Source of the DNA: Cyanophora paradoxa CCMP329 | Taxonomy: Eukaryota; Plantae; Glaucophyta | Reading direction: 5' to 3' | DNA: 64,000 nt | Assembly: GCA_004431415.1 (NCBI GenBank) | Contig: QPMI01000265.1 | Location: 24,738 to 88,737, forward strand | Shown here: one piece after another, positions 45,901-57,100 of the stretch | Layout: each line of letters begins with the position of its first letter | How positions within the stretch are numbered: position 1 is the first letter of the stretch | Made by a program: the position numbers and the translations under genes | The notes under the pieces: model-generated | What the model saw: only the letters and a program-made list of their open reading frames with translations | Told to the model about the DNA's origin: nothing | Database searches by the model: none

Positions 45901-46244
45901 GGGCGCGCTTCGCGCCCGGGCGGGGCTCGCGGCGGGCGTCGGTGGTGCTGGCGGGGAGCGAGGAGGGCGAGGCGGACTCGGGATTCAACGCGGAGGACGA
46001 GGAGGTGCTGGAGGCGATCGGCGTGCAGACGGGCATCATGCTGCGCAACGCGCGCCTCTACCAGGAGACGCGCGAGGCGCAGGCGCGCGTGCAGACGCTG
46101 CTGGAGATCTCCAAGGCCCTCTCCTCGAACGAGCTCGACATCGGCGGCCTCGTCACGACGATCATGACCAAGGCCCGCGACCTCATGGACGCCGACCGCT
46201 GCTCCCTCTTTCTCATCGGTGCGCCGCCCCCCCCCCCCCCCCCC

Positions 46245-46277
<33 letters not shown>

Positions 46278-48287: not shown

Positions 48288-48640
48288 CCACAGCAACCCC
48301 GCCCTCCCTCGTAACCCCCCTCCCACCGGTACCGAACTCTTTCCTTTCCTTGCGCCTTGCACCATTTTACGTATAGTCATCCATGTACCTTATTTGATTC
48401 ATGATGTGCATCTAACAATCGGAATTGCATTCTCCCACGACCGGTGTTCCTCTGATCCCGGCCGAGCCAGCAACCAAAAAACGATCGAGCGTCGATAACA
48501 GTAATCACAATACGTACTACCCGGAGACCCTACGTACTACCAGGGTCGCGGGTGCACGGCTCCCGCAGCCACATAGAAAGCCCGGCACAAGGAAAACTTG
48601 GTGAAGAGATTATGAAAGAGAATTACAAGGGTGAACTGAA

Positions 48641-49365
48641 TTAGTGGCCGATGCGGGCGTTCTTCAGCTCGTTGTTGGAGAGGATGGCCTTCAGACCAGC
48701 GGACGACTTCTCCAGCTGCTTGAGGCGCTCAATGCCTGCAGCGTCGGATGTAAGGACGGCATCGGCCAAGTGCGCATGGCATGCAACCAACGCACCGCTC
48801 ATTGCTACCCGCTCGCGGTTCTCCCGGCGGACTTCTGCGAGAACATCCTGGAGGTAGGGCTCCCTGCGGAGCACGTGCCAGGCATCAGCGCAGGCGGCGC
48901 TGGAGGGGCGTGGGAGCCCGGACCAGGGCTTCTGCATGGCCTGCGAAGCGGGGGCGCAAGTCATCTCATATCAACGCGCATGCGTGCATAGTGAAACAAA
49001 GAACCTGGATCTCGGACGGGAGGTACATCTTCTTGACAGACAGGTCGACAGCACGCTTGACGCGCTTGTTCCGGGCCTCGAGCACGTCAGCGGGCAGGCG
49101 CTTCAGCGCCTCAAGGACCTCCTCGTCCTCAATAAGAAGGTCCTCGTAACGCAGGCCATACTTCCTGCAGCGGCGGTGAGCCACAGTGCCGGCGCGGATC
49201 GCGGCGACTGTCCGCCGCGCACCGGAGGTCCTGCGGAGACGGAGCGGGTCAGCGGGTCCGCCAACCACGCAGGAGAGCACCAAAAGCTATGCGGACCTGC
49301 TCCATGCGGGCGCGGTAGCGCTTAGCGTAGGCCTGCCACAGCCCCGTCTTCGTCACTTTGCTCAT
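48641..49365 (-). CDS. QCR7: Cytochrome b-c1 complex subunit 7
   Basis: LRKYGLRYEDLL..DEEVLEALKRLP....ARNKRVKRAVDLSVKKMYLP...PYLQDVLAEVRRENRER; an upstream start is possible. Confidence 0.9.
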
Positions 49366-49789
49366 CACTGCAAGCGGGCGGCGCGAATCCAGTCATTACA
49401 TTGCGCAAAACCGAAGAAGAGACCAGCCAGCGATTCCGCGTGGCCGGCCGGCGAATCAGGGCACGTCGGCGGCGGTCTTCTATCCGTCTACAAAGACATC
49501 CCCAATGCATAGGGAGCGCACCCGAGTGCACGGCATCCTCGAGCGCGTAAAGGGCCGCCATCCTGTCGGCGCGAACTGTACCCCCGGCCCCGCGTCACGT
49601 CGGCGTTGTTGCCACTCCACTACGTACCCTTTTGCACCACGTAGCAGAATCGAGTTGGACGGGCCTATTACATGATTGCCGGGGCCCCGTGCCCAAATCC
49701 GCTTTGGGCACGTCGGGGCTAGGGCGCGTCGTGCCCAAAGGCCTGGGCACGGCGGGTAGAGCAGCGTCGTGCCCAAGTCGTGCCCCGCG

Positions 49790-52635
49790 ATGGCGGGAGA
49801 GCAGCCTGGCAGCGCGGCAGGCGGGGGCGTGCAGGCTCCAACTATGTGGTCGTTCTGTGTGTACTTGCATAGCGAAGTTGGCAATCCAGCGGAGTGCTTG
49901 CCGACGATGGGCAACATGGTCCAGCACCGCTCATACCGTCGGCGGAGCCCATATTCAGGAAGCTGGTAGACAGGAAGCTTCTTCGTCCGGAGATACAGCA
50001 GATAGATCAGCTGCGCTTCTGGCAGTGCTGGCGGGGAGCTACTGTGCGACTCTATCATGACGTGCGAGTCGTACTGCCGCGTGCAAGCAACGCCGATCGA
50101 CTGATCTGGACTCGGGCATGCGCAGGAGTTCGCCGTGGTGGTCGAGGGAGGGCCCGTTACCCTCATCGTCGCGCCGGCCAAAGTAGTGCAGCCCGACCTG
50201 GCGCACTACGGCCTGGTGCGCTAGCTAACGTGAACGATATCCCGCGCCTGATGTCTCCTGCAGGGCCTCCCACCGGCCGGCCCTGCAGCTCCCGCAGCGC
50301 TAGCAGCGGTAGCGCCTCGCGCCCCACGGCCGCATCCAGCGCGGGCAGCGCCGCCGGAGCGGTGATGAGGATGACGGGCTGGAGCAGTATGAGCGCTTCC
50401 TCAGTCTGGACACGGATGGCATCTTCGGCGGGATCAGCGCTGACCAAGCGAAAGACCAGGTACATGATCCGGGCACGATCCGGGCACGTACGGGGCACGT
50501 CTGAGCACGGGCCGTGCACGCAGATCTTTGGAAAGGGCGCGCGAGCGAACATCAAGAACCTGAACCGATTCCTTGCCGCCCCGTTTCGTCTGCACTACGG
50601 GGAAGCTGACGGCCTGAGCAAGGTGAGAGGACAGAACACGCTGGTCATTGCAGACATGGAAGACGCGTGAGTGGCTGCGTTCTTTTGGAAGCAGCACAAG
50701 AGCAGCGCAAACCTTGCCTCGCAGGTTGGCCGTCCTCCTGGACAGGACGGTGGAGACCTCAAGCATCCCAGCGAAGATCAAAGAGAAGTGCACGGAACGG
50801 ATGAAACAGCGGCTCCAGACCCTCAACCCGTACGAGAAGACCCGAGCACTGCTGGAGGTCAACAGGATCTACAGGACATGGACGATGATCATGTCAGTCG
50901 ACAACATCCCGTTCCTTCCGAAGTGCGCCCTTGCCGCTCTCTTTCTCTTTCTCTTTCTCCTCTTTCTCCCGCCATGGACGCTAAGCCTCGCCGCAGGCCT
51001 GACGTGGAGCCGCCATGGGAAACGAACCTGGCGACAGTGAAGGAGAAGGCGGCCAGGTCGGGCATAACACACCAGAGCCGGGTTCACGCTGCGAAGCGAA
51101 GAGACGACGAGAACTCCGATGGAGGAGGCGGCGCTGCAACCGAGCATCCGAAGAAGGCGACCAAGAAGGCGCCAGCGGAGAAGAAGGCCGCTACGGAGAA
51201 GACGAACCGGGCGCGGAAGCACGAGGAGGCGGAGGACGAGAACGCGGCGGAGGCCGCCGTGACCGGAGCACGTTTGGGCACGGCGCGGGCACATTTGGGC
51301 ACGACGCGGGCACGTCCACAGTCGTCGGGCACGGCTGGGGCACGTAATGGGGCACCACGTGCTGAGAAATCGGTGAGCTTTCATGAGGACGTGCTCGAGA
51401 CGCCCCACGCCCGCTGTCACATTCCAGACACTCATGCAAACCCGGCGCAGGCTACGGGTGGGCAGAACGCAGAGGACTCAGTGAAGAAGAAGAAGAAGAA
51501 GAAGAGGACGCCGGCGCCGAAGGACACTGAGGAAGAGCTGGAGACAGAGATTGAACCGCAACTGTCGAAGAAGCCCAGGGCAGCGAGCGTGAAGGAGCAC
51601 ACGTCGGCGTCGTCGTCGTCGAAGGTGGCTGCCCGCGCCGTCCAACGTGTGCATCTCTCCCCACCTGACGTTCACTGAAGGCAGCATCTGGCCCGGAGAA
51701 GAAGGCGGCGAAGGGAAAGGACCCGGAGCACTCAGGCAAGGCTCAGGAGCAATCTTCGCACAGGGGGCCCAAGCATGCGCCCTCGCGCGACGACGAAGCC
51801 AGCACTCAGGCTCCCCCGTGCGTTCCCGTGCTTGGGCACGGTCTGGGTACTATTTGGGTATGTCGCGTCCTTGGTCGTGCTGCACTCTCGTGCCCAAACG
51901 TGCCCCAATCGTGCCCCAACGTGCCCCATGGTTCTCCCGACGAAATCTGATTCCGGAGCGTCGCTGTTGCAGGCGAGAGAAGGGGAGGCACTACGACTTC
52001 AACACGATGGACCCTACAGGGTGCTTTCTTCGGTCCGCCGTGCCTTCTTTCTGCCCGACTGACATGTCAGACGCAGAAAAACGTGGCGGGATCGGTTCCC
52101 CCCTGTAGAGATCGTCCCAGCCTTGCGGGCAAGCCGGAGCCCAGAGGGCGACATTCTGTACATGATCGACGTGTACACCGGCCGGTACGGGGGCCCCGTC
52201 GACCTGGTCGACGATTCCCGCGGCACCACGCAGTCTCTCTTCATCTGCTGGACGGTCAGCTTGGATGGGTATGAGGACGACTGGGCATATGCCCCTGTCG
52301 TTCAGGGGGCAGAGATCACGACGCTCGAGTGCGAGTTCGATGCCGAGCACGCGGATTCCAAGGTGCTCAACTCCAAGAAAACACCTCCGGCGGTGAGAGC
52401 ACTGCTCCTCTTATCTCTCCTTTCATTTCTTAGCGAATCCCAGTTCAAGTACTTCCTGTGCATACGGGAGACGGTCAAGTCCAAGAGCACATACAAGCAG
52501 GGCCACATCTTCCCCAAGTGCAACAAGCACGGCGATCCGCCGTCGGGCTGCCTAGGGGTGTACGGGATCAAGCAGCTCATTCAGGACACCGCAAAGCTAG
52601 CTGCGGCCCAAAAAAAGGCGGCGGCGGCAAAGTAG
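49790..52635 (+). CDS. Spliced cargo gene(s) of unknown function inside the transposon
   Basis: Protein-like exons (IFRKLVDRKLLRPEIQQIDQLRFWQCW; YMIDVYTGRYGGPVDLVDD...FKYFLCIRE), a basic NLS-like KKKKKKKR and GT-AG introns; exact structure unresolved. Confidence 0.55.
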
Positions 52636-53254
52636 ATCCAGTGTCTATCTCCTAGTAGCAGTCCTAGTAGCTCTACTAGCATTGATAGTGTTGCTCTATT
52701 AGGGTTTTGCAGCGTATCTTCCTTAGAATTGGGTCGTGCACTGGTCGTGCCCGGCTCGTGCCCAAACATGCCCAAATGTGCCCCGTCATGCCCAAACCGA
52801 CTTGATCCTGAATTTAGCAGTGATTGACGTCGCGGAGCACGATTGCGCATTGAACTGCACATTTGCCATGTGAACTTAACAGTATTGATATTTTACAACG
52901 TTTTGATGAAGAAAGGCGATGCGAAGAACTTCAGCATGACATGTTCCGCGTCGCTCAGAAGTCTGACCATCGGACTCGCATCATGATGTGAAGCCAAGGG
53001 TCATGAACTCATGATGAGGCCTCGAAGACCTGAAGCAGTTCCGACCCGTCCGAGAGGCCGCACAAGTTGAATTTGAGAATGCTGAAGCCTTGTTTAACTC
53101 GTATTCATGAAGCTTCATGGTTCGCTCCCTCTTTACCGGTTTCTGCTACTTGCTCGTGCCCACGTCATGCCCAATCGTGCCCAAGTACGTGCCCAGACGA
53201 AGTTCGGACATGCTCAAGGAGGGCACGACTCGGAAACTCTTTCACAACGAAAGG

Positions 53255-53700
53255 CTATTCCAAAATCGATCGTAAACTGGCTGCACTACTTGGCATTAGA
53301 GGGCCCGCCTCAGCCTCAGGCTCGGCGGGGCCAGCCGCGGCCTCTGCCGCGGCAGCGGCCTCCTTCTCGGCGCTCTTCTGTACTTTCTTCCAAGGTTTCT
53401 GGATGCAAGAGCGGTTCTTGCACGCGTCCCTCCCCGACTTCTTGTGGCACTTTGACGAGCAGATGATGTCTTCGTACTTGCAAATGCACTTCTTGTTCGT
53501 GCAGCCAGTCGTGCAGTTGCAGATCTTGCTCGGCCTGTCGATTTCGATGGCGCACCAGTCAAAGAACGCTTTTCTGCCAGGCAAGACATGGCAGTCAGAG
53601 CGCTGAGAAAGAATGCTGGAGGAAGACGGACCTGAGGGTTACAGGTTCGGTGCTGGCGGCGGTGATGCTCTCGATGAGATGCTTGAACCCGGCAAAGCCG
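53255..53700 (-). pseudogene. C-terminal remnant of a Ginger2-type transposase
   Basis: KICNCTTGCTNKKCICKYEDIICSSKCH...CKN resembles the Cys-rich tail of Ginger2/KRBA2-like integrases. The DDE core is absent and the remnant abuts the TIR. Confidence 0.7.
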
Positions 53701-54117
53701 TCCAACTCGATTCTGCAATCATGTAATAGGCCCGTCCAACTCGATTCTGCTACGTGGTGCAAAAGGGTACGTAGTGGAGTGGCAACAGGCGTACCCGCCC
53801 GAGCTTCTTTTTGCGACTGTACATGTAGCGCGGCCTGGCGGCTCCTCGCACTCGAATGGCTCGAACGGCATGCATGTGATTGCCACGGTAAGCGATGAAA
53901 CTGATCAAAGGCTGCCATTGCGACGTCGACGTCGACGTGCATGCGGGCACACGCATCGCGGTGAGCTGTCCGTGGCCAAAGCCCTGAGGCAGGGATGTGG
54001 AGGATCCGGGGCCTGAATCAGGGGACCGGATCCGGGCTCCGGCCGGCGCCGCGGGAGGAAGCGCTAGCGGCGCGCGCGACCACGCGCGCGCGGGGCGCGC
54101 GGGGCGGGGCGGGGCGG

Positions 54118-57100
54118 TCAGGCGAGGGAGCGGACGAAGGCGGAGACGTCGAACTCCTCGTACTGTGCCTCGTCGGCGAGCTCCTCGAGGCCGGCCAGCA
54201 CGGCCGCGACCCCCTTGCCCCCCGCGAGGGCGCCCCGCGGGCCGGCGGCCTCCCCCTCGGGGGCGAGGGAGAGGAGGTCGACGACGTTGCCCGTGTCCAT
54301 GCTCTTCATCGACGCGTTCTCCGCGTTCACGACGGCGTTCGCCACGCCCACCTTGAACTGCTGCAGCGACATGATCCGCTCCTCCAGGGTGCGCCGCGTG
54401 ACGAGGCGGTAGACGTTGACGACGCGGCGCTGCCCGATGCGGTGCGCCCGGTCCATCGCCTGCAGGTCCTTCATCGGGTTCCAGTCGTGCTCCTGCCCGC
54501 CCCGCCGCGCGTGAGCTGCGCCGGGGCGGGGGGGCGGGGGCGGCGGACGAGGAAGATGACGACGTCGGCGGCGGTGAGGTTGAGGCCGAGGCCGCCGACG
54601 TGCGTGGTGAGGAGCAGGCAGTCGATGCTCGCGTCCGCGTTGAAGCGCTCCACCACCGCCTGCCGCCGCCCCGCCTCCACCGACCCTGCCCCCGCCCCGC
54701 TCACGCCCCGCCGCCCCCGCGCGGGGCCGGCCGCCGGCGCACCGTCGAGGCGGAGGAAGGTGACGGAGGGCATGTGCCGCCGGAAGAGGTCCTGCGCCCC
54801 GCTCGTCCCCCGGCCGGCGGGGCGGGCAGGGGGGGGGGGGGGGGGGGGGGGGGGGGCGGGCCTCCTCGACGCAGTCGAGCATGGACTTGAGCTGCGCGAA
54901 GATGAGGACGCGGTGCTGCCCGGGGGCGCCCTCCGCCCCCTGCCATCCGCCTCCTCGCCGCCGCCGCCGCCGCCGATGCCGCACTCGGTGAGGAGGTCGC
55001 GGAGCGCGGCGAGCTTGGGTGCGTGGGCGAGGTCGTGCAGGTCGGAGCCAGCGCGCGCCAGCTCCGCCTCCAGCGCCCCCCGCCGCGGGTGGCCCTCCAA
55101 CGCGAGCCGCGGGTGGCTGCACACCTTCCGCAGGTACTGCAGCGCCTGCAGCGCGCCCCGCCGGCCCCCGCGCGGGCCTCGCCGGCGGCGAGCTGGGCGA
55201 TGGCGGCCTCGACGCCGCCGCGGGCGGCCGAGTGGGAGAACTCCTCGTAGAGGCGGGCCTGCAGGGGCGAGAGCTCGCAGTGGCGGTCCTGGATGATCTT
55301 CGGGGGCAGGTCGCGGAGGACTGCGGGGCGTCGGGCGGGGCGGCGGGGGCGGGGCGGGCGGGCGGCACCGTCCTCCTTCATACGGCGGAGGACGAAGGGG
55401 AGGACCTGCTTGTGGAGGGCCTCCATCGCCAGCGCCCCCGCCTCCCGCTCCGCCCCGCTGCACTTCCCGCCCCGCGCCGCCAGGATCGGCTTCCTGCGCC
55501 CGCCTCGCGCCCGGGGGAGCGGGGCGGGGCGGGGGCGGGGGGCGGGCCCGTAGGCGGCGTGGAAGGCGCGCTCGGAGCCGAGGAAGCCGGGCATGAGGAA
55601 GTCGAAGAGGGACCAGAGCTCGTGCGCGCTGTTCTGGATGGGGGTCCCCGAGAGCAGCAGCCGGTGCGCCGCCGGCAGGCCCTTCACCGCCCGCGCCACC
55701 TTGCTCTGCCCCGCCCCTCAGGCCCCCGCGGCGGGGCGGGGCGGGGCGGGGGGGGCGGGGCGGGGCGGGCCTTGGGGTTCTTGATGACGTGGCCCTCGTC
55801 GAGGACGAGGTAGGACCACGCGAGGCGCGCCAGCGCCTCCCCGTCCCCCCGCACCGCCTGCGCCCCGCTCGCCCCCCGCCAGGCCCGGCCCGGCCAGGCG
55901 CAGGGCGGGGCGGGCCTCGTAGCTGGTGACGACGAGGCCGGTGTGGCGGGCGGTGCGGAGCTCCTCGAGGACGCGCTGCCGCGCCCCGGGCGTCCCCGCG
56001 TACGACACCGCCGTCAGCGCCTCCGCCTGCGCTCCGCCCCGCTCGCGCCGCCCGGGGCCCGGCGCGGCGCGGGGCGGGGCGGACTGGGAGGAAGCGGTGG
56101 CACTCGTTGACCCAGTGGTCGACGAGGGTGGCGGGGCAGACGACAAGGGAGGGGAGCTCGCGGGCCCCCTCCCGCCGCAGCCGCGCGTGGTGGCTCCCCA
56201 CCATGCACAGCGTCTGCAGCGTCTTCCCCAGGCCCATGTCTGCCCCCGCGTCAGCGGCGGGGGCGGGGCGGGGCGGGGGCGGGGGCGGGCGGGCCGTCGC
56301 AGAGGGCGCCGTGGAGGTGGAAGCGGTTGAGGAAGGCCATCCAGGAGAGGCCGTCGCGCTGGTAGGGGCGCAGCTCCGCCCGCACCGCCACCACCGGCTC
56401 GAACGGCTCCACCTTCGACCCGTCGAAGAGCTGCTCCAGGAAGCGCCCCTCCCGCTCCCGCGCCGCCCGCAGGTGCCCCGGCACGCCCTCTGGCAGCGGG
56501 GCCCCCTCCTGCGGGGCGGTGAGCGGGGCGGGGGCCGGCGGGGAGGAGGCGCGCCTGGAGGGGCACGAGGCGGACGAGGGCGGCGAAGCAGCGCGCCGCC
56601 GAGGAGCGCACCGCCTCCAGCGGGTCCGACATGCGCGACAGGCATGGCACCACCTGCGGGCCCTCAGGCCCCCGCCGGGCGCCCCCGGGGCGGGCGGGGG
56701 CGCACGAAGAAGGCGGCGTAGGGGGCGATGCGGAAGCCCATCGCCTCGATCACGTCTGCGGCGCGTCACGCGCGCAGCGGCGCCGGCGGGGGGGCGCCTA
56801 CGGGCGACGGCCTCCGCGGCCCGAGGCGCGCCGGCGGCTCGTCGGCGCGCAGGAGGAGCGGGAGGACGGCCTCGACGACGGCGCAGACGGCCGCCGGGCC
56901 GCAGTGCGCGCAGCAGGCGGCGGCGGCGCGGGCGGCCATCGCGCGTGCCCCGCGTGGGGCGAGCGGAGGGCGGCGACGAGGCCCGGGAAGGCCTCGTCGA
57001 GGGCGCGGCGCTGGACGGCGGGGTGCAGCGCCGGCGCCAGCGCCGCCAGCACGTGCAGCGCCTCCAGCAGCGCCTGTCCCGCCTCTGGCGCCGCCCGCCG

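Follow-up and report, generated by a model that had tools for sequence, protein, structure and literature searches.

To our knowledge, the VANDAL elements of Arabidopsis are the only transposons whose sequence-specific anti-silencing has been worked out in detail. The VANC21 sites in VANDAL21 consist of one short motif, which is set in dense arrays across the non-coding parts of the element and whose binding has been shown experimentally (PMC5735166). Our analysis concerns a transposon of the glaucophyte Cyanophora paradoxa CCMP329, which spans positions 49607-53787 (4181 bp) of a 64,000-nucleotide stretch of contig QPMI01000265.1 (hereafter the window, 64 kb) and in which the heptamer CGTGCCC forms six separate arrays along an element that also carries an additional gene, here called the cargo gene. 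These arrays are real and element-specific. We propose, with a probability of about one half, that they may be docking platforms for an element-encoded reader that marks the whole element.

In its layout, the element is closest to VANDAL/VANC, but it is no member of that group. As in VANDAL21/VANC21 and VANDAL6/VANC6 (PMC5735166, PMC10398659), the short motif is enriched in the element, rare outside it, and organized in dense degenerate tandem repeats; it occupies introns as well as intergenic and terminal non-coding parts, an extra fast-evolving gene lies beside the transposase, and the host is likewise one that methylates young transposable elements (TEs) (PMC12344493). An earlier note on this DNA had pointed to the resemblance in array layout, and the published description of one short motif densely arrayed over non-coding parts agrees with it (PMC5735166). 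Unlike VANDALs, which are Mutator-like, the element has Ginger2/Tdd-type ends, a different motif that contains a CpG, and one array in coding sequence; moreover, binding and hypomethylation have been demonstrated for VANDALs, whereas both are putative here. The cargo has no detectable homology to VANC, as its searches returned neither a Pfam family nor, for the C-terminal 185 aa, relatives outside the transposon family.

Subterminal repeats bound by an element protein are represented by the TnpA repeats of En/Spm (CACTA) and by the hexamers of Ac; TnpA also counteracts methylation-linked silencing. The element shares with En/Spm and Ac the many short motifs in both orientations next to a terminal inverted repeat (TIR). 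In contrast to these systems, whose motifs are found within a few hundred bp of the ends, its arrays span the whole element, and the proteins are unrelated. The arrays start 0.08, 0.86, 1.66, 2.23, 3.13 and 3.55 kb from the left end and are not confined to subterminal positions, with the reservation that the window copy lacks the right subterminal region of a full-length element.

The ends were compared with those of the Ginger2/Tdd group. This group has TGTNR termini, TIRs of 45-300 bp, target-site duplications (TSDs) of 4 bp (metazoan) or 5 bp (TDD-4, TDD-5), and a preference for AT-rich RTATAY targets; the hosts described there are protists, fungi and animals, not glaucophytes (PMC2836005). 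The ends of the window copy are:

49602-49606, no strand: left TSD, GGCGT, 5 bp, read from the sequence and checked by script; the identical pentamer follows the right end
49607-49679, plus strand: left TIR, 73 bp, begins with TGTTG, 100% complementary to 53715-53787
53715-53787, minus strand: right TIR, 73 bp, ends with CAACA
53788-53792, no strand: right TSD, GGCGT

The TGTTG terminus, the 73-bp TIR and the 5-bp TSD, the latter as in TDD-4 and TDD-5, all agree with this Ginger2/Tdd description, and a family gene model contains an H2C2 match below the cut-off; unlike the elements described there, the window copy has no integrase core, and its target is GC-rich rather than RTATAY (PMC2836005). 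This lone target, GGCGT, in a genome of about 67-80% GC, says little about a target preference. Neither a second gene nor internal motif arrays are mentioned in the part of the Ginger2 account at hand (PMC2836005). The term Ginger2-like, used in the earlier note, is hence retained, in the form 'Ginger2/Tdd-like', for the ends and tentatively for the whole family; it could not be upheld for the integrase, which is deleted in the window copy.

Six phased arrays of one word

Counted on both strands, CGTGCCC has 42 copies in the window, compared with an expectation of 22.2 and a largest count of 35 in dinucleotide-preserving shuffles. Twenty-five of these 42 exact copies (CGTGCCC/GGGCACG) fall within 49688-53227 and the other 17 are spread over the remaining 59.8 kb; the density is 6.0/kb in the element and 0.28/kb elsewhere in the window (about 21-fold). 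CGTGCCC is the top over-represented 7-mer of the element, about 14-fold above a Markov expectation of 1.76 (maximum of 7 in 2000 runs of a second-order simulation). The overlapping neighbor words number at most 13, against 25 for the word itself, so that the core has well-defined limits; the linkers between cores are 3-4 bp long and variable. With one mismatch tolerated, 39 clustered sites form six clusters, the centers of which are separated by 0.4-0.9 kb:

49688-49785, mixed orientation: array 1, six exact motifs with two inverted pairs, bordered by the left TIR and the ATG of the cargo gene, within the promoter or 5' untranslated region (UTR)
50471-50520, minus-strand motifs: array 2, nearly all of cargo intron 3 (50460-50523)
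51266-51356, minus strand: array 3, eight or nine motifs in coding exon 6 (50997-51372), with a period of 21 in Tandem Repeats Finder (TRF), in frame
51818-51972, plus strand: intron 8 (155 nt) with array 4, one minus-strand motif at 51834 and four plus-strand motifs at 51889-51926
52735-52795, plus strand: array 5, six plus-strand motifs in the cargo 3' UTR
53155-53228, plus strand: array 6, three exact and two variant motifs on the plus strand and one motif on the minus strand, in the 3' tail of the integrase-like gene, which runs on the minus strand

All seven positions of the core are common to the six separate arrays, with differing linkers. Same-strand neighbors at distances of up to 40 bp (n=28) are spaced by 10 bp in 9 cases, by 11 bp in 11 and by 12 bp in 2, and TRF describes the arrays as degenerate tandem repeats with periods of 10-11 or 20-21. 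The earlier note had reported many CGTGCCC/GGGCACG copies in six clusters with a spacing of mostly 10-11 bp, and both statements are confirmed: the exact and one-mismatch sites lie in the same places, and 20 of the 28 same-strand distances are 10 or 11 bp. It had also named what would speak against it, i.e. a motif that is equally common outside; within the window, the densities given above contradict this. Its description of the arrays as mainly intronic or otherwise non-coding is valid for five of six, which are located upstream of the ATG, in two introns and in two 3' tails, and fails for 51266-51356, which is inside coding exon 6. That 50460-50523 is a GT-AG intron consisting almost entirely of the motif was substantiated by spliced contigs in three runs.

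The contexts of the arrays also bear on who might read them. One alternative is that they recruit a host factor (a transcription factor, an insulator or a chromatin protein) as a promoter/enhancer or boundary, the element proteins not being the readers. Dense homotypic clusters are typical of enhancers, array 1 immediately precedes the cargo ATG, and arrays 5 and 6 are on either side of the convergent 3' ends; yet the word is not above chance in the 59.8 kb of host DNA (17 copies, against 22 in whole-window shuffles) and is no common regulatory word of the host here, so that we regard a host reader as improbable.

The motifs are on the minus strand in arrays 2-3 and on the plus strand in arrays 4-6, the switch being located within intron 8. 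The cargo RNA contains GGGCACG in intron 3 and exon 6, and CGUGCCC in intron 8 and the 3' UTR. Because the RNA carries both the word and its complement, a DNA-level signal is favored over an RNA-level signal.

The mirrored orientation of the motifs between the left and right halves of the window copy would also suit a function in transposition only, i.e. integrase binding sites for the assembly of a synaptic complex, with no role in silencing and an unrelated cargo. Precedents for transposition sites are the 12-mers of Spm TnpA, the subterminal hexamers of Ac and the internal enhancer of phage Mu. The first motif of array 1 begins only 9 bp inside the left TIR, the TIR itself contains the one-mismatch variant CGTACCC, and the Cys-rich tail of the integrase-like protein, which we take to be CXC-like, could bind DNA. 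On the other hand, four of the six arrays lie 0.8-2 kb from either end, in introns, an exon and 3' UTRs, where they are not needed for the binding of ends, and the DNA-binding assignment of the tail has no support from hidden Markov models (HMMs). We therefore consider sites for transposition alone to be unlikely.

The same word in metagenomes

As a control, public metagenome contigs were scanned for three phased copies of CGTGCCC (10-11 bp), which yielded at least 120 loci. Among the 120 loci listed, 116 have a single cluster and none has more than two; the linkers of neighboring units are identical in 64% of cases, versus 0/3 in the element, and none of the listed loci encodes a relative of either element protein. 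The listed metagenome arrays are plain tandem repeats nearly throughout. The unusual trait of the element is thus the dispersed multi-array layout with a conserved core, and not any one array.

These results are relevant to a further alternative, according to which the arrays have no sequence-specific reader: they could be minisatellites spread by slippage or ectopic conversion, or they could have a structural role, in which G-tracts every 10-11 nt form G-quadruplexes or phased AAA tracts bend the DNA. TRF does class the arrays as tandem repeats, plain tandem repeats of this word and period are frequent in metagenomes, and the spacings of the GGG runs are compatible with long-loop quadruplexes. 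Plain slippage is disfavored, because it would leave identical units. Furthermore, it is the full seven-position core, beyond GGG, that the six arrays have in common while their linkers differ, the listed metagenome loci rarely go beyond one cluster, and array 3 stays in frame within its exon. Arrays without any reader appear quite improbable to us.

A proposed reader encoded by the element

What favors an element-encoded reader is the occurrence of the six clusters in such differing contexts (5' of the ATG, introns, exon, 3' UTRs). The six arrays would be high-avidity docking platforms for a sequence-specific DNA-binding protein of the element family. With a 7-bp core every 10-11 bp, the bound molecules would lie on one face of the helix and could bind cooperatively side by side; with a cluster every 0.4-0.9 kb, the whole element would be marked and not its ends alone. 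The purpose may be that the element stays recognizable and open to transcription where the host methylates young transposons, and the recruitment of the integrase is a possible second role of the arrays. In its logic, such a system would resemble VANC or Spm TnpA. Candidate readers are the cargo protein and the CXC-like tail of the integrase-like protein. We infer the anti-silencing purpose from the analogy to VANDAL/VANC, from the methylation of young TEs, and from the transcription of the family.

Several observations weigh against this proposal. Single arrays of CGTGCCC are widespread, and hence one array alone means little. Array 3 is coding, so that non-coding landing pads are no strict rule. 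Pfam finds no domain, DNA-binding domains included, in the long stop-free frames of the element or in the cargo gene models P0001, P0005 and P0006, and the tail of the integrase-like protein has no Pfam match either. Structure prediction of the cargo, which the earlier note had suggested as a check, gave no informative fold: the single-sequence AlphaFold2 models reached a predicted local distance difference test (pLDDT) score of 39.5 for the N-terminal 262 aa and 32.7 for the C-terminal 185 aa. The copies of the family are nearly identical, which leaves no covariation within the family. Finally, over the element, the ratio of observed to expected CpG is 0.99, i.e. there is no CpG depletion and no long-term methylation footprint in either direction.

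A CpG is also part of the core itself, and CATGCCC and TGTGCCC, the variants found most often in arrays 5 and 6, are CpG transitions.

It is a more far-reaching and tentative idea, which we hold to be rather unlikely, that glaucophyte Ginger2/Tdd-type transposons evolved a VANC-like self-marking independently, with a family-specific word, arrayed at every helical turn in introns, UTRs and even a disordered coding stretch, and a private, fast-evolving reader (the orphan cargo or the CXC-like tail). The reader would then coat the element and avert DNMT1/DNMT3-dependent silencing, and non-autonomous derivatives such as the window copy could still supply the reader and respond to it. The same architecture is present here in an unrelated superfamily, and the host belongs to a lineage separated from green plants for over a billion years. 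If it is functional, the combination of motif arrays with a private reader would constitute a recurrent escape of transposons from DNA methylation, and the 7-bp word together with the two candidate proteins would make a compact testable pair. What the window copy adds is that arrays and cargo persist after the loss of the integrase, that an array is tolerated in a coding exon, and that an intact cargo frame is supported by short reads.

Boundaries and copies of the family

The terminal 23-mer of the TIR occurs twice in the window, at the two element ends only, and both junctions to unique host DNA are found in an independent DNA run. Because the contigs of other copies part from the window exactly at 49606/49607, the tips of the TIRs are the mobile ends. 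Neither blastn nor tblastx revealed a further copy of the element elsewhere in the 64-kb window, and no Rfam family is predicted over 49000-54200.

Depth in the DNA run is about 66 in the flanks, 418 in the internal part and about 1400 in the TIR (about 21 arms), which suggests that the internal part is present in about six copies and that there are about ten end pairs. In this run, the collapsed family contig differs from window positions 49713-53700 by one substitution over about 4 kb. With this near-identity, TIRs that are 100% identical and an intact TSD, the family is young and active-looking. Given that the TIR depth exceeds the internal depth, the genome contains additional derivatives or a subfamily that share these ends and this word. 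Other copies match the TIR and the first ~145 bp and depart after 49751 into a different sequence, in which GGGCACG is present again; most copies have T at position 49743.

The cargo gene and its protein

Both genes of the element are transcribed and spliced. The gene structure of the cargo was derived from contigs of RNA-like runs:

49791-52635, plus strand: cargo gene, 11 exons and 10 GT-AG introns, spliced contigs X15, X16 and X18
50460-50523, plus strand: intron 3, 64 nt, joint 50456>50521, cut +3, GT..AG, in three runs
51817>51973, plus strand: joint of intron 8, GT..AG, in three runs

The ATG is at 49791 and the stop codon at 52633-52635, and the RNA-like contigs end at 52861-52932. Splice joints (ten on the plus strand, one on the minus strand) are present in three RNA-like runs, and none is present in the DNA run X1. 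At adjusted coordinates, all introns are GT-AG and the translations of the exons match the paralog models P0005, P0006, P0001 or P0002. Exon 6, which houses array 3, is unbroken at 50997-51371 in the X15, X16 and X18 contigs, and its translation equals P0006 over 125/125 residues; the array codes for part of the disordered middle of the protein, and its 21-bp period preserves the frame.

Compared with all short-read contigs, DNA and RNA-like alike, the window has six single-base homopolymer differences, at 49920, 50321, 50355, 51658, 52704 and 53300. Three of them break the cargo frame and one alters the last residues of the integrase-like gene; the window version is present in no contig. Since these differences are probably errors of the long-read assembly, the cargo frame is probably intact.

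In the predicted protein of about 700 aa, a long K/E/A-rich middle, in which lysine runs occur, separates about 300 N-terminal from about 185 C-terminal residues. Whole-protein searches were based on the gene models in the database, and the exons of the window copy were searched separately and unjoined. In word-index protein searches, all matches were C. paradoxa gene models of the family (EukProt EP00741). An exhaustive phmmer search with the C-terminal 185 aa against 1.84 billion representatives found the copies of the family and one FN3-repeat protein, but no diverged paralog, and the ESM Atlas provided no usable match for the C-terminus. Two candidate matches were rejected. The match to the FN3-repeat protein was taken to be spurious, as one 28-residue strand motif was matched 11 times; the match of P0006 residues 54-145 to a short-chain dehydrogenase in the PDB (E ~0.03) is a chance hit without Pfam backing, in which the Y-x3-K spacing is absent.

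The earlier note had called the cargo an orphan gene, and the exhaustive search bears this out for the C-terminal 185 aa; for the remainder of the protein, nothing in these comparisons contradicts it. A recently captured host gene, which the same note had named as an outcome that would speak against its view, finds no support. Lysine runs are typical of nuclear proteins, and together with the lack of relatives they would fit a fast-evolving, element-specific factor.

Deletion and the integrase-like gene

The second gene runs on the opposite strand and is truncated in the window copy:

53286-53700, minus strand: integrase-like remnant, the last two exons (53632-53700; 53573 down to the stop) with the intron 53574-53631, no start codon
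53701-53714, no strand: deletion junction, 14-nt filler copied from the inner TIR and bounded by microhomology

The minus-strand CT..AC joint 53573>53632 is present in three RNA-like runs, and the RNA-like contigs of this gene begin at 53164. The remnant is 100% identical to the C-termini of P0003, P0004 and P0008, and the family contig leaves the window at 53700 and runs on for about 1.5 kb through sequence that is absent from the window. At the junction, the 18-mer 53698-53715 recurs at 53732-53749 and, reversed, at 49645; gap repair that is interrupted after excision typically leaves filler DNA with microhomology at its borders, and this scar shows how the derivative came about. The window copy is an internally deleted, non-autonomous derivative of a two-gene transposon. 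Other internal deletions were observed as well, namely 152 bp (51063-51216) in low-complexity exon 6, in DNA and in one RNA-like run, and 858 bp (50868-51727) and 425 bp (51999-52425) in RNA-like runs only.

One RNA-like contig of X18 joins 53684-53712 to 53795-54100 on the minus strand, with CT..AC borders, and skips 82 nt over the right TIR. It runs from host sequence downstream of an SNF2 helicase gene into the element and covers junction-specific sequence, which suggests read-through chimeric transcription of the window copy itself.

P0008 adjoins a cargo gene model on its contig (g16944 and g16945, tig00020996). It matches Pfam Integrase_H2C2 (PF17921) with E=5e-4 and 20.5 bits, under the cut-off of 25.5 bits; the HxxxH...CxxC pattern is visible. 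An integrase-type DDE (rve) catalytic core, which like the H2C2 zinc finger is a trait of Ginger2/Tdd transposases, was found neither in any frame of the window copy nor in P0008, whose model skips the interval from the zinc finger to the C-terminal part. A Pfam search of P0003 and P0004 gave no meaningful family, and the integrase-like models have no match in a PDB sequence search. By language-model features, the look-alikes of P0004 (C-terminal 213 aa) in the ESM Atlas include a KRBA2-like cluster (0.92); KRBA2 derives from Ginger2 (PMC3575427).

The C-terminal module of the integrase-like protein (window 53400-53560, minus strand) contains ten Cys and one His in the arrangement CxCx3Cx4CxCx6Cx3CH. 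This spacing resembles that of the DNA-binding CXC/CRC domains of LIN54, TSO1 and MSL2, without HMM support. Judged by these residues, the Cys-rich tail may be at least as good a candidate reader as the cargo protein.

Genomic surroundings

According to Pfam, the element is flanked by two host genes, both on the minus strand: to its right lies the 3' end of a gene of the SNF2 helicase family, and to its left the 5' end of the gene for the 14-kDa subunit of cytochrome bc1 (48600-49563, minus strand; UCR_14kD, E=8e-18). The element is only about 43 bp upstream of the first mapped exon of the latter gene and therefore lies in or beside its promoter. The same gene has a 154-nt intron (49368-49521) directly 5' of its ATG.

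In and near the host genes with 75-85% GC, homopolymer tracts occur at 46226-46276 (about 50 C with one T) and at 54828-54856 (about 29 G), as do runs of (CCCCG)n. The transposon has a low GC content of 54-60%, and so have islands at 1-12, 22-26 and 30-34 kb of the window.

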